A stretch of DNA of 64,000 nucleotides from positions 186,001 through 250,000 of IMG/VR virus record IMGVR_UViG_3300046665_000548; one strand, given 5' to 3'. Position numbers and translations under genes: made by a program. How positions within the stretch are numbered: position 1 is the first letter of the stretch; every line of letters starts with the position of its first letter. This document shows, piece after piece, positions 33,040 to 60,752 of the stretch. The notes under the pieces were generated by a model. That model did not search any database. It saw only the letters and a list, made by a program, of their open reading frames with translations, and had not been told where the DNA came from.

Positions 33040-33116
33040 TGGTAGGCGCGGTGGGATTCGAACCCACGTGACCAGGATTTTAAGTCCCGTACGGTAACCA
33101 ACTACGTCACGCGCCC
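33040..33116 (-). tRNA. tRNA-Leu(TAA) with a short (class I) variable region
   Basis: GGGCGCG/CGCGCCT acceptor stem, CGGGA-CTTAAAA-TCCTG anticodon arm, 5-nt variable loop GTCAC, GTGGG-TTCGAAT-CCCAC T arm, ACCA. Confidence 0.85.
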
Positions 33117-33130
33117 AAAAAGAGATGGGG

Positions 33131-33179
33131 TCAGCGAGAGAGACGTAAGTGGCCGAGTGAGTTCATGAAATTATTTATA
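33131..33179 (-). promoter_or_regulatory. TATAAATA late promoter plus 11-codon leader ORF (MNSLGHLRLSR) before tRNA-Leu(TAA)
   Basis: Promoter at 33172-33179, ATG 33166, TGA 33131-33133; contains TTA and two CTC codons. Confidence 0.5.
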
Positions 33180-41845: not shown

Positions 41846-43447
41846 GTGGATCAACTGAGCCCATTTCGTGAAATCGACTGGCAAAAAGAAGATGTTCAGG
41901 TGGAGCGCGCTGGTAAGCGCATCATCCTTCCGGGCGAGCCCGGCGAGATGCCTATCGATGATGCTATCAATGCGCTTCATCGAGTCAAAACCGACGAAGA
42001 GCAGCAGTTCAACGTTCACGAGGTGATCGACGCACATCCGGTCGATGCCATTGTGTCTTTCGTCGCTGCAATGCGTTCGATCTATGGATGGGCATCGGCA
42101 GTCCCGACCCCCGGTTTCTTCGGCCCCCGTCCGCCGCAGATGATCTCCATCAAGACCGGCCCCGACGCAGACGACGTGATCCAGGTGCCGTGGGGCAGCT
42201 TCAAGCTCCCGAATGTCGAGAACCTGATTCAGGTCGCGAACCAAGAGCATGAAGGACGCCCAGTCCTCATCATCCACGGAACGGTGCGCAAGAAAGAGCG
42301 CGGTGTTTTGCTCGAACTGGCCAAGCTCACCCGTGAATTCTTGAAGACTCATTCGATCTTCAAGGGCAAGGCATTCACCATTCCAGTGGATGAAGACGGC
42401 GACCTCGAAGTGATGGAGCCGCCGACCTTCATGGACGTAGCCAGCGCGAAGCGCGATCAGCTTCTGCTGAACGATGAGGTGATCCGGCAGGTCGAGACCT
42501 CGCTGTGGGGACCGATCCAGCATACCGCCCTTTGCCGTCAGCATCAGATTCCGCTGAAGCGTGGTGTTCTGCTTGAAGGCCCGTACGGCTGCGGCAAGTC
42601 TCTGACTGCCTCGATCACGGCCAAGCTCGCTCAGGACAACGGCTGGACCTTCGTCAACCTCGACAAGGTGCAGGGTCTCAAAGCGGCACTGGAATTCGCA
42701 GTGCGCTATCAGCCCGCCGTGGTCTTCGCGGAAGATATCGACCGCATCATGGAAGAGCGCGACGAAGAAGCGAACGATCTGATCAATACCATCGATGGCG
42801 TTCTGTCGAAGAATGCCGAAGTCATGGTGGTGCTGACGACGAACCACGTCGAGAAGATTCAGCCCGTCATGCTGCGCCCCGGTCGTCTGGATGCGGTCAT
42901 TCGTATTCCGGCTCCGGATGCGGCGACGGTCGAGAAGCTGGTTCATTTCTACGGGCGCAACCTGATCGACAAGGACTCCGATCTGTCCAGCGTTGGTAAG
43001 GAACTCGAAGGTCAGATTCCGGCAACCATTCGGGAAGTGGTCGAGCGTTCGAAGCTGGCGATGGTCGTTCGCGGCGAGACGAGTGTTTCGGGTGAAGCAC
43101 TGCTCGTTACTGCTCAGGGCATGACCCAGCATCTGGCCCTGCTCAACGCGCCAGTCGAAGAGAAGACCGATGCTGACCGTCTGTGGGATGCTCTCGGAAG
43201 CCTCATCGGCGGCCAGACCGGCAGCGGCCAGACTCCGCAACAGCTAGCAAACGCTGTGACGAACACGGTGTCAAATGCCACTGTGCAGACCGCGCGCAAG
43301 ATCGACCGCGCGGTGGACTCCATCGGTCAAGTTGCGATGGGCGGAGCCGCTGCGGTGGTCGAGCGCGTTGATCAGGCGGAGAAGCGTCTCGGCGCGAAGA
43401 TTGCCGATCCCGCGCCGAAGAAGAAGAGCGCCGCATTCGACCGCTAA
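41846..43447 (+). CDS. AAA+ ATPase (single module, chaperone-like)
   Basis: GPYGCGKS Walker A, VFAEDID Walker B, TTNH sensor 1, LRPGRLD arginine finger. Confidence 0.92.
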   Translation: MDQLSPFREIDWQKEDVQVERAGKRIILPGEPGEMPIDDAINALHRVKTDEEQQFNVHEVIDAHPVDAIVSFVAAMRSIYGWASAVPTPGFFGPRPPQMISIKTGPDADDVIQVPWGSFKLPNVENLIQVANQEHEGRPVLIIHGTVRKKERGVLLELAKLTREFLKTHSIFKGKAFTIPVDEDGDLEVMEPPTFMDVASAKRDQLLLNDEVIRQVETSLWGPIQHTALCRQHQIPLKRGVLLEGPYGCGKSLTASITAKLAQDNGWTFVNLDKVQGLKAALEFAVRYQPAVVFAEDIDRIMEERDEEANDLINTIDGVLSKNAEVMVVLTTNHVEKIQPVMLRPGRLDAVIRIPAPDAATVEKLVHFYGRNLIDKDSDLSSVGKELEGQIPATIREVVERSKLAMVVRGETSVSGEALLVTAQGMTQHLALLNAPVEEKTDADRLWDALGSLIGGQTGSGQTPQQLANAVTNTVSNATVQTARKIDRAVDSIGQVAMGGAAAVVERVDQAEKRLGAKIADPAPKKKSAAFDR

Positions 43448-43460
43448 GAACGAGAATGAG

Positions 43461-43486
43461 AACGGCGGCTTCGGCCGCCGTTTTTC
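43461..43486 (+). terminator. Intrinsic terminator
   Basis: AACGGCGGC-TTCG-GCCGCCGTT plus T run. Confidence 0.9.
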
Positions 43487-43653
43487 GTTTGACAGAAAGG
43501 TAGAGCGCCATGGCTATCAGTAAAACTGAAGAGAAATTGAAAGAATTTCAACAGGCATTGAAAGACACTGGTGTAATCGCCCCTTGGCGAGCAGAATCCA
43601 TAGCTAACTTGCTCAAAGAATACGTCGATTTGAGACTGCAAGAGGAAAAGTGA

Positions 43654-44022
43654 ATGTCCGTTCGTTCAGCAACCGGTCACGACAAAATCATTGGGCAGAA
43701 GATCAGAGCCCGCCGTCTCATCGAAAAGATGTCCCAGGAGACGTTGGGAGAAAAGATCGGCGTATCCTTTCAGCAAGTGCAGAAATATGAGAAGGGCACG
43801 AATCGCGTCAGCTACTCCAGGCTGGTGCAGATTGCAGACACGTTAAACGAAGGCGTTTCGTTCTTCACCGAGGATACCAGCACGGTCAGTGAAGAAGGCC
43901 GCGCGATCCAGGAGGCAATGGCCCAGCCTGACGTTCAAAAAATTGCGCTCAGTGTTATGAGGATGACGCCTGTGATGAGAAAGGCGATCCTCGACTTCGT
44001 GAAGACACTCGAAGCCAGTTGA
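43654..44022 (+). CDS. XRE-family HTH regulator (alphaproteobacterial type)
   Basis: MSQETLGEKIGVSFQQVQKYEKGTNRVS. Confidence 0.92.
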   Translation: MSVRSATGHDKIIGQKIRARRLIEKMSQETLGEKIGVSFQQVQKYEKGTNRVSYSRLVQIADTLNEGVSFFTEDTSTVSEEGRAIQEAMAQPDVQKIALSVMRMTPVMRKAILDFVKTLEAS

Positions 44023-44376
44023 GGAGTGTGCGGTGAAAGAAGCCGACGAAATAACGCTGTTGCGTGAAGCGTTGAAGAATATGCTCGGACGAATTGAGAT
44101 CATGAAATTGAACTCGCCATTCGGCGGTGATCCTCAATCCGAAGACGAACGTATTGCGCTTTGCTTGTCGGAGAACCGTTTTCCTTACCCGCCTTACGGA
44201 GAACTCAAGAAATTTGAGTTAGAAGATTTCCGGCAGGCGTATGCGGAATTTGAAAAAAGGGGACGCACGTGAACCGGATAGCAAAGCTGTTTTTGATCTA
44301 TTTCGGAATTGCGGTCATATCAGCAGTGACGTTCTTGATCGGCTACGAAATCCACGTAATTCTTCATCTCTGATAG

Positions 44377-44591
44377 TGGTGGAGGCGACGGGATTCGAAC
44401 CCGCGACGCAGCCAGCACCCAAGCATTACCAAGGGCTGAAATTGGGTTTAGAACAGCGTTTCGCCGTATACCATTCACCATAGCACACGGCTGTATCGAA
44501 ACGTCCCCGCTTCCATTTAACTAGCTGCCAGTTTTACCTGGACCGGCATCCTGTTCTCCGGTGCTCTGCCGAGCGCTGAGCATTCGCCCCC
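44377..44591 (-). ncRNA. ssrA: Compact one-piece tmRNA (215 nt)
   Basis: GGGGGCG/CGCCTCC-ACCA acceptor with G3:U70, T arm GCGGG-TTCGAAT-CCCGT, helix 2 AGCACC/GGTGCT, PK1-like ATGCCGG..GTAAAACTGGCA, and an H5-like hairpin at 44463-44491 with TGA in the loop. Confidence 0.8.
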
Positions 44592-44612
44592 TAAGGGTTT
44601 ATTTGCGTATTC

Positions 44613-44687
44613 TGGAGGTTGAGGTGGGGATCGAACCCACTCGTGGAGGTTTTGCAGACCTCAGCGTTCCCATTTCGCCACTCAACC
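44613..44687 (-). tRNA. tRNA-Cys(GCA)
   Basis: GGTTGAG/CTCAACC, GAGGT-CTGCAAA-ACCTC, U73, CCA. Confidence 0.95.
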
Positions 44688-44688
44688 G

Positions 44689-44764
44689 TCAACGCGACAG
44701 GATTCGAACCTGTGATCCCCAGTCTCCCGAACTGGTAGGGACGGCCAGACTCCCCTACGCGCTG
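44689..44764 (-). tRNA. Atypical tRNA-Pro(GGG) (C33, A37, G38; no encoded CCA)
   Basis: CAGCGCG/CGCGTTG, A73, CCAGT-TCGGGAG-ACTGG, ACAGG-TTCGAAT-CCTGT. Confidence 0.75.
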
Positions 44765-44772
44765 TAACTCAA

Positions 44773-44979
44773 TTAGTCTAGCTTGAACCGCTCTGCGACA
44801 GGCAGACGGCGATAGCGCTCGATAACTCCGCTATAGAATTTGATAGCTTCGAGCGCGATCTCTCTGACTTCAACTAGGCTGTCGGCTTCGACGCAAAAGT
44901 AAGGCGAACTACTCGACATAGCCACCCAACGGCCCGGTTCGTATTCTCTGACGGTGACCGTCACGATGTTATCCGTCAT
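44773..44979 (-). CDS. HicB-like antitoxin-fold small protein inside the tRNA array
   Basis: VTVREYEPGRWVAMS...FCVEADSLVEVREIALEAIKFY resembles the HicB N-terminal domain; GAAGGGG RBS. Confidence 0.5.
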   Translation of the reverse strand: MTDNIVTVTVREYEPGRWVAMSSSSPYFCVEADSLVEVREIALEAIKFYSGVIERYRRLPVAERFKLD

Positions 44980-45000
44980 GACGGTCCCCTTCAAAACCTA

Positions 45001-45077
45001 TGGAGTCGGCGGCAGGACTTGAACCTGCATACTCCGGGTTTGCAACCCGGCTGACTAGCCATTCTCAACACGCCGAC
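45001..45077 (-). tRNA. tRNA-Cys(GCA), second copy
   Basis: GTCGGCG/CGCCGAC, CCGGG-TTGCAAA-CCCGG, U73, CCA. Confidence 0.92.
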
Positions 45078-45078
45078 G

Positions 45079-45153
45079 TGGTGACGGAACCTGGGATCGA
45101 ACCAGGGACATGCGCCGTATGAAAGCGCCGCTCTACCGCTGAGCTATACCGCC
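45079..45153 (-). tRNA. tRNA-Met(CAT), elongator-type (Ile2 not excluded)
   Basis: GGCGGTA/TTCCGTC, GCGCT-TTCATAC-GGCGC, ACCA. Confidence 0.88.
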
Positions 45154-45160
45154 GAAAGCA

Positions 45161-45246
45161 TTGTTCGTGACCCACCGGACTACTCAAAGGACCGGGAGGC
45201 TGTCCTTGTCCATATGAGAGTTTGCCTCCCGATGGGTCTCGAACAA
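45161..45246 (-). ncRNA. Unassigned structured element within the tRNA array
   Basis: Nested stems TTGTTCG/CGAACAA, GACCCA/TGGGTC and CGGGAGGC/GCCTCCCG. Confidence 0.35.
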
Positions 45247-45261
45247 CGCTCTATTAACTTG

Positions 45262-45338
45262 TGGTCAGGGTGGCAGGCTACGACCCTGCGATTTCCTCTT
45301 CCCGAAAGAGGCGGATTACCAGACTTTCCCACACCCTG
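45262..45338 (-). tRNA. tRNA-Pro(CGG) with non-canonical T loop (GTCGTAG)
   Basis: CAGGGTG/CACCCTG, CCTCT-TTCGGGA-AGAGG, ACCA. Confidence 0.9.
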
Positions 45339-45352
45339 TAACTCTGTATGCT

Positions 45353-45438
45353 TGGTGCGGCCAAGAGGACTCGAACCTCCACTCTTTTTGGGAACTACCA
45401 CCTCAAGGTAGCGCGTCTACCAGTTCCGCCATGGCCGC
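45353..45438 (-). tRNA. tRNA-Leu(GAG)
   Basis: GCGGCCA/TGGCCGC, CTACC-TTGAGGT-GGTAG, long variable arm, ACCA. Confidence 0.95.
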
Positions 45439-45462
45439 ATTCGTGGTGTTAGATGTGCTCTG

Positions 45463-45537
45463 TCAGGCGTCTCGGATTCGAACCGAGGATACTCCTGTAC
45501 CCAAAACAGGCGGATTACCAGACTTTCCCAACGCCTG
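45463..45537 (-). tRNA. tRNA-Pro(TGG) embedded in a 16-bp acceptor-stem extension
   Basis: CAGGCGT/ACGCCTG, CCTGT-TTTGGGT-ACAGG; no CCA at the normal position; flanks pair (45448-45463 with 45538-45553). Confidence 0.9.
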
Positions 45538-45590
45538 ACAGAACACATCTAACGCACGCGACTAGAGTAATCTCTTGCTCCAGTCAGTAT

Positions 45591-45678
45591 TGGTGGGCGG
45601 AGTAGGACTCGAACCTACGTAGGTTTTGAAGCCGGGAGGTTTACAGCCTCCGCCGATTGCCGCTCCGGTCACCCGCCC
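45591..45678 (-). tRNA. tRNA-Tyr(GTA)
   Basis: GGGCGGG/TCCGCCC, GGAGG-CTGTAAA-CCTCC, long variable arm, ACCA. Confidence 0.95.
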
Positions 45679-45740
45679 ATGGAAGACGATCTCCGACTGT
45701 CCGCAGACAGTTCATCAATCGTCATCACTAAACTTTAGAC

Positions 45741-45776
45741 AAAGAAAAACCCCGGTCAGATTTCTCTGCCGGGGCT
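45741..45776 (-). terminator. Attenuator terminator upstream of the tRNA array
   Basis: AGCCCCGG-CAGA-GAAA-TCTG-A-CCGGGGT followed by TTTTCTTT. Confidence 0.9.
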
Positions 45777-45800
45777 CTTCTGCTTTCGGGTTCTGCTCGC

Positions 45801-45887
45801 TTACACCACCAAGATGCGCGCGACCAGCCCGAGGGCAGAAAGCCCCCTGGTGGGATAGCACGGCATTGGGTAAAGAGCGTTGAACAT
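45801..45887 (-). CDS. Attenuator leader peptide MFNALYPMPCYPTRGLSALGLVARILVV (not in ORF track)
   Basis: GAGGAAG RBS; codons 5-12 match the downstream tRNAs; codons 14-20 can pair with the terminator 5' arm. Confidence 0.8.
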   Translation of the reverse strand: MFNALYPMPCYPTRGLSALGLVARILVV

Positions 45888-45931
45888 CGAATTCTTCCTC
45901 TGACGCGTCCGGTTGGACCGTCTGACAGTTT

Positions 45932-45939
45932 TATTTATA
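45932..45939 (-). promoter_or_regulatory. T4-type late promoter TATAAATA driving the leader and tRNA array
   Basis: Exact T4 late consensus 45 nt upstream of the leader ATG. Confidence 0.75.
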
Positions 45940-45969
45940 TAACCAGACTGATTCGAGTGTCAACAACTT

Positions 45970-46245
45970 TTATTGGGAAAGTCGTTGGATATCTTTTTCA
46001 AGACCAGCCATGACATTTGCAAGCCGTTCACGATGCTTTTCCAGTATGGCGAGCATGCCCGTTTCGGACTTTGGCTTGCGCCGAGCAGCGCGACCCTCCT
46101 CGGACATCGGCTTCTTGACCTTCTTCAAGATACGCTGTCCGCTCGCGTCTTTCTCTTTTGACTTGTAATACCGGTCTCCAGTCTCCGGGTCCTGGTAATA
46201 GCCTTTGTACTGGCCAGTCATGATTTCAAGCATTGTCTTGTGCAT
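45970..46245 (-). CDS. Basic hypothetical protein
   Basis: 91-aa ORF with GGAGGG RBS. Confidence 0.6.
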   Translation of the reverse strand: MHKTMLEIMTGQYKGYYQDPETGDRYYKSKEKDASGQRILKKVKKPMSEEGRAARRKPKSETGMLAILEKHRERLANVMAGLEKDIQRLSQ

Positions 46246-46376
46246 CGGATTTACCCTCCAAAAAGTAACTTACCTTCGCATGGGGTAAAATTGCCGTCAA
46301 TGGCTTTGTTGTATTGAAAATTATGGTATTTTAGTTCGCGTAAACGCGGTATGACAGGGCAAAGGAAAGGCCATAT

Positions 46377-47873
46377 ATGTCCATTGATGATCTTTTGAAG
46401 CACTTCGAGATTTCGTATCCCACGTCCGAAGCAACGCTGCAAAGCGTATCCCCGATATGGGGCGGGGCGATTACCAGCGTCGAAGAGACGAACATGGAAC
46501 AGTTCGTCACCATCATGGAAGATGCCCAGACCGCGTACGAGCAGTGGCGGAACGTCCCGGCTCCTCGTCGGGGCGAACTGATCCGTATCTTTGGAAATCT
46601 CCTTCGAGAGAACAAAGAACAGCTTGGAATGCTCGTCACCGTCGAGAGCGGCAAGATCGTCTCGGAAGGTCTCGGTGAGGTTCAGGAAATGATCGACATC
46701 TGCGATTTCGCGGTTGGTCTCTCGCGGCAGCTATATGGGCTGACCATCGCGACCGAGCGCCGCGACCATCGCATGATGGAGACGTGGCACCCAATGGGCG
46801 TGGTCGGGATCATCTCGGCCTTCAATTTCCCGGTCGCTGTATGGGCCTGGAACGCCGCCCTGGCGCTTGTTTGCGGAAACGCGTGTGTATGGAAGCCTTC
46901 CGAGAAGACCCCTCTCACGGCCCTCGCTACGCAGCGATTATTCCTTCAGGCGTGTGAGCAGTTCGGATCGGATGCTCCGGTTGGCCTATCCGGGCTGATC
47001 ATTGGTGATCATGCAATCGGTAAGCATCTCGTGACGCATCGTCATACGAAAGTCATTTCAGCAACCGGTTCGACTCGGATGGGTAGGCAGGTTGCTGCGG
47101 CAGCGTCGGGTGATTTCAAACGCACCATTCTGGAGCTTGGCGGCAACAACGCGGCGATTGTCTCGATGGCCGCCGATCTTGATCTTGCCATTCGTGGTAT
47201 CGCGTTTGCTGCCATGGGAACGGCTGGACAGCGCTGCACGACGCTTCGTAGGCTCTTTGTGGATGTGACCGTCTATACGCCGTTCCTAGAGCGCTTGAAG
47301 GCAGCCTATTCGAGCGTGAAGATTGGCGACCCTCGCGAGCCCGACACGCTCATTGGCCCGCTGATCGACAGGAATGCCTTCGGAATGATGCAGATGGCTC
47401 TGGAGCAAGCTCGCAGCGAAGGCGGGACCGTTCATGGTGGCGAAGAAGTGGAGGTTACCGGCCGCGCTGGTATCTACGTCAGACCGGCTCTGGTTGAGAT
47501 GCCGGGACAAACTCCCATCATGCTTCGGGAGACCTTCGCGCCTATTCTGTACGTCACCGCGTATAGGTATTTGGAAGATGCCATTCAGATGAATAACGCG
47601 GCCGAACACGGCTTGTCGTCTTCGATCTTCACGAATGACTTGCGTGAGGCCGAACTGTTTCTATCCGCTGCCGGTTCGGATTGCGGCATCGCCAACGTCA
47701 ACATCGGTCCATCTGGCGCAGAGATCGGCGGCGCATTCGGCGGTGAGAAGGATACCGGAGGAGGTCGCGAGTCTGGTTCTGATGCGTGGAAGGCGTACAT
47801 GCGTCGCGCCACGAACACTATCAACTATGGCAGTGATCTCCCGCTAGCCCAGGGCGTCAAGTTCACAGTATAG
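46377..47873 (+). CDS. Aldehyde dehydrogenase family 7 (alpha-aminoadipic semialdehyde/P6C dehydrogenase-like)
   Basis: ISAFNFPVAVW, LELGGNN, GTAGQRCT, ETFAPI, GAEIGGAFGGEKDTGGGRESGSD. Confidence 0.92.
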   Translation: MSIDDLLKHFEISYPTSEATLQSVSPIWGGAITSVEETNMEQFVTIMEDAQTAYEQWRNVPAPRRGELIRIFGNLLRENKEQLGMLVTVESGKIVSEGLGEVQEMIDICDFAVGLSRQLYGLTIATERRDHRMMETWHPMGVVGIISAFNFPVAVWAWNAALALVCGNACVWKPSEKTPLTALATQRLFLQACEQFGSDAPVGLSGLIIGDHAIGKHLVTHRHTKVISATGSTRMGRQVAAAASGDFKRTILELGGNNAAIVSMAADLDLAIRGIAFAAMGTAGQRCTTLRRLFVDVTVYTPFLERLKAAYSSVKIGDPREPDTLIGPLIDRNAFGMMQMALEQARSEGGTVHGGEEVEVTGRAGIYVRPALVEMPGQTPIMLRETFAPILYVTAYRYLEDAIQMNNAAEHGLSSSIFTNDLREAELFLSAAGSDCGIANVNIGPSGAEIGGAFGGEKDTGGGRESGSDAWKAYMRRATNTINYGSDLPLAQGVKFTV

Positions 47874-47882
47874 TATAGTAAC

Positions 47883-47966
47883 GCGGGCGTGCCGGAACCG
47901 GTAGACGGAAGGGACTTAAAATCCCTCGCCTCGTGCGTGCGGGTTCGAGTCCCGCCGCCCGCACCA
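47883..47966 (+). tRNA. tRNA-Leu(TAA), canonical class II
   Basis: GCGGGCG/CGCCCGC, AGGGA-CTTAAAA-TCCCT, variable arm, ACCA. Confidence 0.95.
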
Positions 47967-47976
47967 CTAGGTAGGA

Positions 47977-48591
47977 ATGATCATGCGTGATTTCGATGAG
48001 ATAGCGGAAGGTGTTTACGTTAGACGCGAATACACGCCAGAGCAGATCAAGAAGCTCACCACGCGGCCGAACAAAATGATCAATGATGCGATTGAGAAAT
48101 CTCGCGAGCGCATGAAAGAGGACATGGGACGGTTTGGAAAGAATGGTTTGAAGAAACGGAGCGCATGGCAGTTCGAACAGCCTGCGTCTCGCACCGTTCC
48201 GCTTCGATATATCCCGGACAAATTGGCTTGGGCATATGCGGAAGCAGAGCTTCCGTTTATTCTTTTCATCGATGCTGAAAAATGCTCCTCCCCTGAGATG
48301 TTTGACTGGTGTGCGGAACAGTTCGGTGAACCGTTGCTAAGCGAGCAGCGACCAGTCGATTATCGATCCAGGAGACGTGACAGAGATTATCTTCAAGGCA
48401 AGATTGCCACGACGGATCAAACACGCAATTGCAGGAGAATGTACCGGACCGCTGATGGTGGTGGTCAATGGCTCGGTTGGATATCACTCAATCCGGCAGT
48501 AACGTCAGCGTTCATACTACCTCAGCGCGGCACTTACTGGTTTTTCCGAACAGAGACACAGCGTATTGCTTTTAAGTTGCGTTGGTATTAA
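47977..48591 (+). CDS. W..FKLxW paralog family protein
   Basis: EMFDWCAEQFG...WFFRTETQRIAFKLRWY. Confidence 0.65.
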   Translation: MIMRDFDEIAEGVYVRREYTPEQIKKLTTRPNKMINDAIEKSRERMKEDMGRFGKNGLKKRSAWQFEQPASRTVPLRYIPDKLAWAYAEAELPFILFIDAEKCSSPEMFDWCAEQFGEPLLSEQRPVDYRSRRRDRDYLQGKIATTDQTRNCRRMYRTADGGGQWLGWISLNPAVTSAFILPQRGTYWFFRTETQRIAFKLRWY

Positions 48592-50752: not shown

Positions 50753-51368
50753 TCACGCCCCCATAGCAAGCATTAGTCGATCCACGCCGACCGCCCATCC
50801 TACACCTTCCTGGTAAGTTCCGCCACCAGCAACTTGCTTTTGAGCGCCTAAACTTTCCACGGCGGCTTCGAAACCGTCCTCGACATAGTAGGATAGACCT
50901 CGTTTTACCGAATCGCTCCAAGTATAGGCCATGCCAAGCTTATCCAAGCAAAGTCGCAAAAGTTGTTTTGCTTGATCTGATTCGGCCGAACCAAGCATCT
51001 CGATGCCGAACTGGGTGAATTCGCGGTAGCGGCCCTTCTGGGGGCGCTCGTAGCGGTAGCAGCGCTGCACATAGAAGACGTTGCGGGTCTTCATGCGCTT
51101 GGACCAATCGTCCCGCCACGTCTCCTGAACGAGCCCGGTAACTTCAGGAATCAGGCACACGTTGCGTTCGCCCTTATCCTGGAAACGCCACATCATCTGG
51201 GAATTCTCGGCCCCGACTTTTTCATCAAAGGTGGCGCTCTCCCAAATGCTTGGGACAATAATTTCCTCGAATTCAGCGTCGATGAAGACACTCCCGAAGA
51301 GTATTGACAACCTTATTGTAGAGCCGGGCCTCGTCGCCGGACAAAATTCGTGTTCCTCTTAACATCAT
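50753..51368 (-). CDS. Minimal histidyl-tRNA synthetase-like catalytic core, interrupted by a +1 frameshift near 51299-51293
   Basis: Frame 1: MMLRGTRILSGDEARLYNKVVNTLR (stop at 51273). Frame 2: VFIDAEFEEIIVP (motif 1), YRYERPQKGRYREFTQ (motif 2), RGLSYY, GGG.Y, GWAVGVDRL (motif 3). No insertion or anticodon domain. Confidence 0.8.
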
Positions 51369-51824: not shown

Positions 51825-51900
51825 TGGTACCAGTTGGGAGAATCGAACTCACCGTATTCCGATCCACAGTCGGACGCTACTACCATTGAGCTAAACTGGC
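51825..51900 (-). tRNA. tRNA-His(GTG), alphaproteobacterial type (no G-1, G1:U72, A73)
   Basis: GCCAGTT/AACTGGT-A-CCA; TCCGA-CTGTGGA-TCGGA; T at position -1. Confidence 0.92.
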
Positions 51901-51988: not shown

Positions 51989-52022
51989 TAGAAAAAGCCC
52001 CCGATCTTGCGACCGAGGGCTT
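51989..52022 (-). terminator. Attenuator terminator upstream of the tRNA-His pair
   Basis: AAGCCCTCGGTC-GCAA-GATCGGGGGCTT followed by TTTCT. Confidence 0.9.
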
Positions 52023-52049
52023 CGAAAACTCAACCGATGAAGACGCGCG

Positions 52050-52130
52050 TTATCGCATCACGGTTGGCCGAAGCCCCGAGGTATGATGCGAATGCTGGTG
52101 CGAGAAGTTCTTCATGATGGGGTATTTATA
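52050..52130 (-). promoter_or_regulatory. Late promoter plus His-rich leader peptide MKNFSHQHSHHTSGLRPTVMR
   Basis: TATAAATA at 52123-52130, ATG 52115; in frame with the tail of ORF 52050-52637; antiterminator pairing with the terminator arm. Confidence 0.8.
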
Positions 52131-52637
52131 CTTGTGGTTTGTGTCATCGTCAAGTTGTTTTTCCAATATGAAGGAATGGGTGGTTTCCTTCAGCAGTTCA
52201 GCCACGCCATTTGCGGCCGAAACCATCTCAGCGTGTCGGTCGCCGGGGATTTTCCCCTCCAAACTATTCGCGGTGCCGTGCAACCAGGATAGCGCGGTTG
52301 GATAATTGATGTCGAAATTCGGAGCCATTTTCTCGTCAATTCCCTCGTCGGAAATCTGAGCGAGCGGATAGATGCTCCTGATCATGTATGAGGCGATGTA
52401 TTCGAACAGCCACCACTGAATATCACCCCTGGGATGCTTCCATTCAAGCTTCCTCGGAGAGATGCGCCAAAACCAAAAAGTTTCGTCTTCTGGCGTCAGA
52501 ACGCTGATCCCGTTGTCGCCGTAAAGCTCGATGCGCAAGCAACCATCGAACCGTGATGCGTTGACCTCACGCAGTTTTTCCACGCACAGATTGAGATCGA
52601 TGTTTTTCTTGAAGGAAACGAATGCGCAATTACCCAT
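52050..52637 (-). CDS. Hypothetical protein whose last 21 codons double as the His leader
   Basis: ORF track. Confidence 0.6.
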   Translation of the reverse strand: MGNCAFVSFKKNIDLNLCVEKLREVNASRFDGCLRIELYGDNGISVLTPEDETFWFWRISPRKLEWKHPRGDIQWWLFEYIASYMIRSIYPLAQISDEGIDEKMAPNFDINYPTALSWLHGTANSLEGKIPGDRHAEMVSAANGVAELLKETTHSFILEKQLDDDTNHKYKYPIMKNFSHQHSHHTSGLRPTVMR

Positions 52638-59310: not shown

Positions 59311-60705
59311 TTACTTGTCGCTGGCCTCATGAGCCGCGATGAACTTGATCACGTTCTCGGACCATCCGTCGATGTGAACCCACTTCGGCTTGTAGCCGAT
59401 GCCGTTCTTCTCGGTGGAGATGTTGATCAGGTAGTTGCGCTTCCCGAAGGCGTCCGCCTTGTCAGGCTTGTTCAACGGGTTGGTATCGCAATCCTGCTCG
59501 TCCGTGATAACGATCACACGATCCGCATTCTTCTCGGCCTTCGCAATCTGCTCCATGCACTGCACGAGGAAGATTCCCCCGCCACCCTGGGCGCTTGCAG
59601 CCTTGCGGATCGCATCAACCATCGCCATACCCTGGCGAGCAGGGATCAAACGAGTGTCATGGATGCGACGGCTATCCGAACCAGCCGTGGCGTAAACCAC
59701 CGGCTCTTCCGAAACACCAGACACGAAGGCAGACAAAGCCGCAGCCGTATCGAGACGGGTCAGTTCGGACTTGCGCGAGAGCATCGCGCCCATCGAACCC
59801 GACACGTCAACCACCAGAACAGTCTTGCCCGGCAGCTTCTCGATATCGGCAAGCGCACCCATCAGTGCCTGATCAAGCTCACGCTCGAACTTGGGCGCAT
59901 GACGAGCCGCCGTGATGAAGCGGAACGGGAGTACGCGGCCAGCACCCTTGCGGGCAGTGATCGCTTCCTTGATCAGCTTCGCATCGACCTTCTCCTGCTC
60001 CATCTTGCGGAGGTTCCGCAGAAGAGCGAGATAGCCAAGCTTGCCATCGGTCAGAAGACGCTCGAAAGTGTCCTTCTTGTCCGCACCGGCCGTGAGATTT
60101 GCCTCCCAAGTATCCGGGGTAGCCATCTTGTCAGCGACAAGACGCTCCCACAGGGCGCGCTGATCGACCGACTTCGGCTTCGGATGCACGAGGAAATACA
60201 CGTCGCGAAGCGTGATCGCGTTGTCGCGATTGTACTTGGCAAGCTGGTACTCATCGAACTTGAGGAACGCCTTGCGGAGGCCCTTACGCATCGCGTGAGA
60301 CATGACCTTCTTGAGCTTGTCCACACCAACGCCACGCTGCTTCGCATGGATCGCCAGCAATTCGGCAAGCTCGTCGGCACGCGTCACGACATTCGCAATC
60401 GTATCTGCGACGATTGCTCCCTTGTGCTGGGTCGCGAGGATCGAGCACAGGAGAAGCGAGACGTGTCGGAGGTTCTGCTCGTGGCGAGCCTCGATAGCGA
60501 TCTCGGCCAGGGTCTCCGGCTTCACACCATTCGCAAGCTCTACAATGCGGTCGTAGACGGACTTGCCGTCCACATAGAACGCATCCTCCCACAGGAGACA
60601 GGTCATGACGGTGCGACGCAGATTCCCCTCAACAGTCGTCTTGACCGCTTGAGCACCACCAGCCGTGAAAATCGGAGACGGCTTCTTCGCAACATTTGTT
60701 CGCAT
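59311..60705 (-). CDS. Ro60/Rsr-like TROVE plus vWA RNA-binding protein
   Basis: EARHEQNLR, RADELAE, AKYNR...LRDV.FLVHPKP, TWE, LGYLALLRNLR, VLPFRF, VDVSGSM (MIDAS), VITDEQ; GGAGGT RBS. Confidence 0.9.
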   Translation of the reverse strand: MRTNVAKKPSPIFTAGGAQAVKTTVEGNLRRTVMTCLLWEDAFYVDGKSVYDRIVELANGVKPETLAEIAIEARHEQNLRHVSLLLCSILATQHKGAIVADTIANVVTRADELAELLAIHAKQRGVGVDKLKKVMSHAMRKGLRKAFLKFDEYQLAKYNRDNAITLRDVYFLVHPKPKSVDQRALWERLVADKMATPDTWEANLTAGADKKDTFERLLTDGKLGYLALLRNLRKMEQEKVDAKLIKEAITARKGAGRVLPFRFITAARHAPKFERELDQALMGALADIEKLPGKTVLVVDVSGSMGAMLSRKSELTRLDTAAALSAFVSGVSEEPVVYATAGSDSRRIHDTRLIPARQGMAMVDAIRKAASAQGGGGIFLVQCMEQIAKAEKNADRVIVITDEQDCDTNPLNKPDKADAFGKRNYLINISTEKNGIGYKPKWVHIDGWSENVIKFIAAHEASDK

Positions 60706-60725
60706 GACATATACCTCCATCAGAT

Positions 60726-60752
60726 GCAAAAGCGGCCCCCTTGGACCGCTTT
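60726..60752 (-). terminator. Intrinsic terminator between the Y RNAs and the Ro60 RBS
   Basis: AAAGCGGTCC-AAGG-GGGCCGCTTT-T. Confidence 0.75.

Follow-up and report, generated by a model that had tools for sequence, protein, structure and literature searches.

The window analysed here, 64,000 nucleotides of the viral contig IMGVR_UViG_3300046665_000548 (607,744 bp; window position x corresponds to contig position 186000 + x), carries on its minus strand an array of eight transfer RNA (tRNA) genes, which is preceded by a promoter, a 28-codon open reading frame (ORF) and an intrinsic terminator. Codons 5–12 of this short leader are each read by a tRNA of the array. On the evidence of the sequence and of modelled folding, the element is probably a transcription attenuator of the ribosome-mediated (leader-peptide) type that acts on a phage tRNA operon, and in which antitermination would depend on ribosome stalling. 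The array cassette is one of at least four paralogous cassettes (array, His, Ser and Gln/Leu) in this 608-kb phage. We know of no tRNA operon for which control by leader-peptide attenuation has been demonstrated, and next to nothing is known about the regulation of phage tRNA sets, many of which are very large.

The leader of the tRNA array and its codon list

The regulatory codons 5–12 (45852–45875, minus strand) are CTT TAC CCA ATG CCG TGC TAT CCC and encode LYPMPCYP. By standard wobble rules the array reads 11 codons; nowhere else in the six reading frames of the 64 kb do six or more such codons follow one another, and in a window-wide scan an 8/8 match was found in one of 96,458 windows. 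Runs of eight are expected ∼0.05 times in the whole window and ∼1e-4 times in the ∼250 nt upstream of the array. When the in-frame codon usage of the phage is used instead, the frequency of the codon set is 0.16 and p^8 = 4e-7 (binomial 4.3e-7), and the coverage of all seven tRNA species by eight in-set codons carries a further chance of 0.02. Each tRNA species of the array has one or two codons in the list, and the Pro isoacceptors are distinguished by CCA, CCG and CCC. A preliminary description of this DNA, made from the letters alone, had claimed that all eight codons are read by the array and that every tRNA species is listed; both statements stood, and the six-frame scan showed in addition that the run is unique. 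We are close to certain that this codon matching is functional.

The same description had proposed an architecture of the his/trp/thr/pheST type, and all of its components were found in the sequence and its predicted folds, namely the short ORF, the terminator, a competing antiterminator and an anti-antiterminator hairpin, with which the modelled ribosome geometry agrees. All parts lie on the minus strand. The leader ORF (45801–45887, ATG at 45887) comprises 28 codons and a stop and reads MFNALYPMPCYPTRGLSALGLVARILVV; 6 nt 5′ of the ATG is the Shine–Dalgarno (SD) sequence GAGGAAG (45894–45900), and both the ORF with this ribosome binding site and its codons 5–12 are present as first described. 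Region 1:2, the anti-antiterminator hairpin (45795–45878), pairs the regulatory codons with the 3′ end of the leader ORF. The 5′ strand of the antiterminator (region 2, 45828–45846) corresponds to leader codons 15–20, and its 3′ strand (region 3, 45771–45790) overlaps the 5′ arm of the intrinsic terminator (45738–45781), a 17-pair hairpin followed by UUUUUCUUUG. An antiterminator of ∼17 bp had been proposed for these two strands and indeed forms 17 standard pairs, which occupy 11 nt of the terminator 5′ arm. The terminator, previously called strong on inspection, folds at −27.9 kcal/mol with z = −5.7 (45781–45743 plus the U-run).

The promoter had been labelled a late promoter. Its −10 region TATAAATA is indeed present (45932–45939); in T4-type late promoters this motif stands at −10 without a −35 element and is used with a gp55-like phage sigma factor. 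Because TATAAATA lies 18 nt 3′ of a perfect TTGACA (−35 box read in the sequence at 45963–45958), the promoter of the array looks sigma-70-like and not specifically of the T4 late type. Three copies of TATAAATA occur in the window compared with 0.65 expected, and each of them is a minus-strand copy with tRNA genes immediately 3′ of it. In the clade, the six promoters of array and His cassettes all have TATAAATA 16–18 nt 3′ of TTGAC(A/G), as does the Ser promoter; that of the Gln/Leu cassette has ATAAATA instead, and the third copy in the window (33179) has no TTGAC box. The spacing of TTGAC(A/G) and TATAAATA fits a host sigma-70-type promoter.

Protein searches gave two related contigs, in which the ATPase or aldehyde dehydrogenase is 81–84% identical. 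The first, L009 (JGI 3300066659), has the same eight-tRNA array, and its leader shares promoter, SD core, ATG, length and stop. The second, L015 (Logan SRR13312979), has the same leader followed by differently sequenced tRNA-Tyr and tRNA-Pro-TGG genes, after which the contig ends. Thus the ORF and its codons are retained in both array-keeping relatives, as are the TTGACA box amid diverged flanks, the AGGA core of the SD, and the frame, length and stop of the leader. A 41-nt block that includes codons 5–12 is identical in the three genomes, and the 5′ untranslated region (∼40% identical) and codons 3–4 have diverged. All seven degenerate core codons are the same in the three genomes, for which ∼0.002 is expected under peptide-only selection; in the two flanking protein genes, 40–44% of the residues conserved in the three genomes retain their codon and 56–60% have changed it. 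Pairing is retained in 98% of paired cells in the terminator, 98% in the antiterminator and 90.6% in the 1:2 hairpin, as against 33–65% over the three helices and 33–57% for the 1:2 hairpin in slid controls, and every change in the terminator between the three genomes preserves pairing. Sampling of the clade is sparse: the JGI metagenome collection gave no match in two pattern scans, and exact and wobble-degenerate leader patterns matched only the source contig in IMG/VR. No tRNA array was found near the gene in the more distant ATPase relatives (L011, L012 and L014, 72–68% identical) or in the IMG/VR aldehyde-dehydrogenase relatives (L002–L004, 54%).

The minimum-free-energy fold of the whole leader (−85.8 kcal/mol, z = −5.2) contains both the region 1:2 pairing, which is 91% paired across genomes, and the terminator; in truncated transcripts the antiterminator is more stable at equilibrium than the 1:2 hairpin. 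Constrained folding was carried out with the ribosome-covered mRNA masked and with the transcript as it would be before synthesis of the terminator 3′ arm. Under these constraints the antiterminator probability was ≥0.875 when the A-site was at codons 3–11; it fell to 0.5–0.66 at codon 12, to 0.16 at codon 16 and to 0 at codon 20. Thus, in the model, the end of the matched run is the last stall position that permits antitermination.

These observations of anatomy, codon matching and conservation, together with alternative structures that depend on the modelled position of the ribosome, suggest the following mechanism. The strong sigma-70-like promoter would give a transcript whose first 28 codons are translated, and codons 5–12 would serve as a list with one or two codons for each downstream tRNA species. 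When any listed aminoacyl-tRNA is scarce, the ribosome would linger on codons 5–12 and keep the region 1:2 hairpin open, codons 15–20 would be free to pair with the terminator 5′ arm, and RNA polymerase would read into the tRNA genes. When decoding is quick, the ribosome would be over codons 15–20 as the terminator emerges, so that the terminator could form and transcription would end. The outcome would be a negative feedback by which just the listed tRNAs are supplied as translation requires them.

Paralogous cassettes and other phage lineages

The His cassette (51990–52153, minus strand; also placed at 52130) consists of TTGACG-N17-TATAAATA, a leader and a terminator. Its leader MKNFSHQHSHHTSGLRPTVMR has 21 codons (52115–52050) with the His codons at 52100–52083, and an antiterminator segment in the leader pairs with the 5′ arm of the 12-bp terminator (52023–51994). 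ARAGORN places tRNA-His-GTG 3′ of the leader (51825–51900, minus strand), and a gene for a fragment resembling histidyl-tRNA synthetase (HisRS; 50753–51310, minus strand; Pfam tRNA-synt_His, 2e-15) is probably in one operon with it. The cassette is retained in L015 (MNMFTHHHTHH...) and in L016 (MKTFSHQHSHH...) with 4–5 His codons, and in both the leader is followed by two tRNA-His genes and the HisRS-like gene. CAC and CAT are swapped between the His leaders of the three genomes, as expected because a single tRNA-His reads both. A mechanical ORF of 195 aa (52637–52050) continues in frame into the His leader of the window because a stop that is present in L015 (TAG just 5′ of TTGACG) is missing here.

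The Ser and Gln/Leu cassettes lie 3–10 kb past the end of the window. In the Ser cassette (L019 166–345, plus strand; contig 259,678–259,499), the leader MTHFFSQSSSSSSASGVPGSVMR contains eight Ser codons (two each of AGC, TCA and TCG, one TCT and one TCC) and is followed by the terminator, two small genes and tRNA-Ser-TGA, -GCT, -CGA and -GGA. All four isoacceptors are covered: AGC is paired with Ser-GCT, TCA with Ser-TGA, TCG with Ser-CGA, and TCT and TCC with Ser-GGA. In the Gln/Leu cassette (L019 6527–6690, plus strand; contig 253,317–253,154), the leader MFKNLLQQLQLTNEGQPRVQ has the core LLQQLQL, encoded by CTA CTC CAG CAA CTG CAA CTT, and the tRNAs behind it are Gln-CTG (two), Leu-GAG, Leu-CAG, Leu-TAG and Gln-TTG (two), every species of which is listed. 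Protein genes, one of them with a DUF433 domain, are present between leader and tRNAs in these two cassettes. The His, Ser and Gln/Leu leaders begin 5–8 nt after the −10 motif and are therefore near-leaderless. In the folding model, the dependence of antitermination on ribosome position also holds for these three cassettes.

A change of leader codons together with array content had been put forward as something to look for, and across the paralogous cassettes the codons do differ accordingly (His; four Ser isoacceptors; Gln/Leu). When codons 5–12 of each leader were scored against each of the four tRNA sets, the diagonal of the matrix was 8 for the array, 4 for His, 6 for Ser and 7 for Gln/Leu out of 8, and all off-diagonal scores were ≤2; the binomial tails were 4e-7, 2.5e-5, 1.4e-6 and 1e-6, respectively. 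For the single tRNA genes Leu-TAA (47883) and Ser-GGA (62228) no leader was found. The third TATAAATA copy of the window (33117–33179, minus strand) is followed 5 nt later by a mini-ORF, MNSLGHLRLSR and a stop, with one TTA codon, and then by tRNA-Leu-TAA (33116–33040). This locus has no recognisable terminator and no obvious TTGAC box and was left out of the count of cassettes; it may be degenerate or represent a different type of control.

We further used a generic scan that proceeds from a tRNA cluster to its codon set and compares the best eight-codon upstream window with the background of the whole locus. It recovered all four cassettes of the source phage and flagged one in Brevundimonas phage Kabachok; the tRNA regions of T4-like, T5-like and Ralstonia jumbo phages, used as controls, gave no leader signal. 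The scan is weaker for very large arrays (for instance the 19-tRNA cluster of phiCbK), and the leaders in front of them were found by homology: homologues of the Kabachok leader occur across the phiCbK-like group in 45 records including phiCbK itself, and leaders are present in phiCbK, Rogue, BL10, RB23, Colossus, CcrPW and Brevundimonas phages. Such a leader has a TTGAC box and an ORF of ∼31 codons with a core of Val, Ile and Gln codons plus Asn or Phe codons, and an array beginning with Val, Ile and Gln tRNAs follows; its segment CGG GCG GGC C has the same sequence as the 3′ arm of the terminator, which folds at −30 kcal/mol. The core contains Phe in all phages with a canonical tRNA-Phe in the array (phiCbK, Rogue and RB23) and Asn where tRNA-Asn alone is present (Colossus, CcrPW and Brevundimonas phages). 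In BL10 the core also has Phe, and only a non-canonical GAA tRNA-like sequence was found there. Colossus has two Arg-ACG genes and extra CGC and CGA codons in its leader. A second leader in phiCbK, gp335, has 45 codons that are almost wholly Ser, Ala, Leu, Thr, Pro, Lys and His and is located 5′ of a Pro/Lys/Leu/Ala/Ser array.

The stretch from the leader terminator to the first annotated tRNA in the phiCbK-like phages (L021 3150–3270, L022 3160–3390, L007 11600–11800 and L026 3140–3355) contains a conserved SD and a 5-codon mini-ORF; of five phages read, four have it as MTGGD or MNNGG, and in phiCbK the ATG is missing. Also in this stretch are two tRNA-like sequences, both unannotated and non-canonical, whose anticodon loops carry GTA (Tyr) and GAA (Phe), and the Tyr and Phe codons of the phiCbK-like leaders may correspond to them.

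The unrelated, AT-rich, 735-kb phage LR756501 has three cassettes with a common promoter-like motif. In the first, the core YNDYCIND is followed by a bL12-like gene and an Ile/Cys/Asp/Asn/Tyr array; in the second, CTA, CTT, CTG, TTA, CTC and TTG precede Leu-TAG, Leu-GAG, Leu-CAA and Leu-TAA; in the third, the core SKHSKHFSSSSKWF precedes Trp, His, Phe, Lys and Ser tRNAs. In each of the three, the final leader codons have the same sequence as the 3′ arm of the terminator, and the modelled switch point is right after the regulatory run. The bL12 (L7/L12)-like gene (L030 7960–8330, minus strand; LR756501.1 ∼187,960–188,330) lies between the leader with its terminator and the tRNA array, and thus would be co-regulated with the tRNAs.

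Taken over the three lineages, all 13 leaders have a hairpin of −16 to −31 kcal/mol with a U-run between the leader and the regulated genes, and all 13 contain a segment that is identical or near-identical to the terminator 3′ arm. As long as the A-site of the modelled ribosome has not moved beyond the regulatory codons, the 5′ arm of the terminator is sequestered with a probability of 0.6–1.0, and this falls to 0.0–0.5 just past the last regulatory codon. We think it probable that tRNA-rich phages of several unrelated lineages share such a 'tRNA-stat', in which an isoacceptor-level codon list stands before each attenuated tRNA operon, the ribosome gauges decoding capacity and the limiting tRNAs are transcribed, with a synthetase fragment or the ribosomal protein bL12 co-transcribed in some cassettes.

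The tRNA array and its genomic setting

ARAGORN found eight minus-strand tRNAs in the array (44613–45678), from Tyr-GTA (45678–45591) through Pro-TGG, Leu-GAG, Pro-CGG, Met-CAT, Cys-GCA and Pro-GGG to the last Cys-GCA (44687–44613), in the order given by the preliminary description. Seven of the eight genes match tRNA in Rfam, and the Tyr gene was matched only by tRNA-Sec, below threshold. An ORF of 68 aa (44979–44773, minus strand) is located in the gap between Cys-GCA and Pro-GGG; it is without family match and is missing from the otherwise identical array of L009. At the 3′ end of the array, what had been called a transfer-messenger RNA (tmRNA) is tmRNA-like below the Rfam threshold: the stretch 44377–44591 (minus strand) matches Rfam RF00023 at 31.9 bits (E = 3.5e-10), under the gathering score of 47, over 215 nt of the 374-position model, and ARAGORN called no tmRNA and no tag peptide there. 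This tmRNA-like stretch is conserved in L009, and the tRNA regions of Brevundimonas phages contain a stretch with ∼73% identity to it. Between the attenuator and tRNA-Tyr lies a further stem-loop (45682–45722, minus strand), 39 of whose 41 nt are the same in L009 and which is also present in L015. The spacer around it cannot be aligned with that of L009 and has insertions of at least 60 nt; the stem-loop may be a processing site or a second regulatory site.

Among the proteins encoded by the contig are phage tail fibres and an AAA ATPase from a family confined to phages. Between the tRNA loci is an aldehyde dehydrogenase gene (46377–47873, plus strand) with tRNA-Leu-TAA immediately 3′ of it. 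The nearest named cellular proteins are from Caulobacterales (66–70% identity) and are named L-piperidine-6-carboxylate dehydrogenase by their sources, and the gene looks like an auxiliary metabolic gene. A Caulobacterales-like host is plausible because of this relationship and because the tmRNA-like stretch resembles those of Brevundimonas phages. A TROVE (Ro60-like) gene is present at 59311–60729 (minus strand). Just 5′ of the Gln/Leu cassette (L019 6217–6520, plus strand), a TTGACG promoter precedes ∼280 nt of non-coding DNA that is rich in GC and in hairpins and ends in a terminator; it has no Rfam match and could be a Y-RNA-like or other structured RNA. In the relative L010 (4156–4886, minus strand), a promoter of the type TTGA-N-TATAAATA precedes a small ORF and a gene with an RF-1 domain (peptidyl-tRNA hydrolase or ArfB-like), and this promoter class may mark translation-related genes generally.

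Alternative readings and relation to known attenuators

Several points weigh against attenuation by a codon list. What we infer from the features above is that the leader is translated and that termination is regulated in vivo, along with the sign and the trigger of the feedback. With three sequences per cassette, we found no double compensatory changes and only one-sided, pairing-preserving ones, and hence covariation cannot prove the helices. Naked truncated transcripts already favour the antiterminator at equilibrium (P ∼0.75–0.93); thus termination must depend on the order or kinetics of folding and on masking by the ribosome. With no more than two codons per tRNA, the leader may respond less sensitively to the lack of any one tRNA than hisL or pheL do. 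The leader codons are decoded by host tRNAs as well, so the conditions that cause stalling are not obvious. The tRNA-CAT may be an elongator Met or a lysidine-Ile tRNA. The match is imperfect in places: the long Pro/Lys/Leu leader of Rogue retains Ser codons and no tRNA-Ser was found in its array, and Arg codons are present in phiCbK-type leaders whose arrays have no Arg tRNA.

A change of trigger alone, with the same mechanism, would make the attenuators an alarm switch that turns on replacement tRNAs upon depletion by host anticodon nucleases, tRNA-modifying toxins or phage-induced degradation. The architecture would respond to any loss of decodable tRNA, and the cassettes include tRNAs for Tyr, His, Asn and Asp, which are targets of known anticodon nucleases. 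There is also literature on phage tRNAs that counter tRNA-targeting defences, in which we found nothing that ties such tRNAs to attenuation. The cassettes are not confined to a defence-specific set, however: nearly every tRNA cluster examined has one, those for Ser, Leu, Gln, Val and Ile included, and none of the cassettes has a defence or nuclease gene linked to it. Moreover, the codon usage of the phage (GC content at third positions 0.58; CTT, TAT, CAT, CCA and CCT frequent, the first four heavily used) suits demand-driven supplementation and fits a demand-driven homeostat. We regard the alarm function as possible, with a rather low probability.

Less likely still is a different read-out, in which the leader is translated and its codons matter, and the effect is exerted through Rho-dependent polarity, through control of the stability of the precursor or of its processing by RNase, or through a coupling of translation to the folding of the first tRNA. 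The conserved stem-loop before tRNA-Tyr, the protein genes between leader and tRNAs in some cassettes, and the Leu-TAA locus at 33116–33040, with a promoter and a leaderless mini-ORF containing one TTA and no recognisable terminator, could be read in this way. Such a read-out does not account well for the strong hairpin and U-run directly 3′ of the leader in 13 of 13 convincing cassettes, in each of which the leader copy of the terminator 3′ arm is a hallmark of antitermination.

That the leader encodes a functional micro-protein, with its resemblance to the tRNA set incidental, appears very improbable. The C-terminal stretch GLSALGLVARILVV is hydrophobic and the peptide is conserved in three genomes, but the paralogous leader peptides are unrelated and have as their sole common property the match to their own downstream tRNAs. 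Core codons are kept at synonymous sites, and the C-terminal half has undergone non-conservative substitutions (L to T or M, V to M) with RNA pairing retained. Chance, by which an ORF-like stretch upstream of the array happens to hold cognate codons, gains a little from the selection bias of examining many features of the window and has a negligible standing given a probability of ∼1e-4 or lower at the array locus alone and replication in three further cassettes, two relatives and two other phage lineages, with three control phages negative.

Leader-peptide attenuation is established for enterobacterial amino-acid operons by trpL, hisL, pheL and leuL. The phage cassettes resemble these in the short leader with regulatory codons, the predicted alternative 1:2, 2:3 and 3:4 hairpins, the intrinsic terminator and the deciding role that the ribosome position would have. 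They differ in being phage-encoded, in having as targets tRNAs (sometimes with a synthetase fragment or bL12) rather than biosynthetic enzymes, and in codons picked for each tRNA species down to the isoacceptor, whereas there one amino acid is repeated. In thrL (Thr and Ile codons) and ilvL (Leu, Val and Ile codons), too, one leader integrates shortages of several aminoacyl-tRNAs; those leaders contain many repeats for the amino acids of one pathway, whereas here five to seven unrelated tRNA species appear once or twice each and mirror the array. The pheST operon of Escherichia coli, with its pheM leader, also places a component of the translation apparatus under attenuation and is nearest in logic to the His cassette with its HisRS-like gene, but it is the synthetase that is regulated there and tRNA genes here. 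Among the known leaders, the phage element is most similar in its working to the multivalent thr and ilv leaders and to that of pheST. An attenuator at the tRNA-Phe genes of E. coli was considered and discarded, as pheV in K-12 has a promoter only and no leader.

T-box riboswitches likewise sense tRNA charging through a codon-like specifier and control a terminator before translation-related genes, but they bind uncharged tRNA directly without translation, whereas here the translating ribosome would be the sensor. Rfam gave no T-box match (RF00230) or T-box motif on the leaders. None of its leader families (His_leader, Trp_leader, Thr_leader, Leu_leader and others) matched at E ≤1 over 43000–48500 or at E ≤0.1 over L019 1–9000, nor did any other cis-regulatory family on the leaders. 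As judged from its sequence, the element is functionally like the Rfam leader families and not a homologous member of them.

The literature on phage tRNA arrays (codon compensation or counter-defence) deals with the same objects, and large clusters are thought there to support late translation; the arrays are treated as constitutively or temporally expressed cargo, whereas here they would be attenuated. The genome paper on phiCbK (PMC3556154) annotates terminators, reports no RNA elements besides tRNAs and never mentions a leader or attenuation. The preliminary description knew of no attenuated phage tRNA operon, and we likewise found none described in open-access full texts, that paper included; an earlier description elsewhere is possible. 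The cassettes would thus combine a known mechanism, leader-peptide attenuation, with a new class of target, tRNA supply, and a new isoacceptor-resolved design of the sensor.

If true, this amounts to a direct feedback loop on tRNA supply at isoacceptor resolution, a design that was either repeatedly invented or is very old in large phages. The leader would be a built-in annotation of the codons that are read by odd phage tRNAs, including non-canonical ones that tRNA finders miss, and from the leader codons of the cassettes one could infer which codons unusual phage tRNAs functionally decode. Leaders would also reveal operon structure in giant-phage genomes, and they may serve synthetic biology as compact, programmable 'codon-capacity sensors'. 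Moreover, the design is present in phiCbK, a phage of the model organism Caulobacter crescentus, which makes it experimentally tractable.

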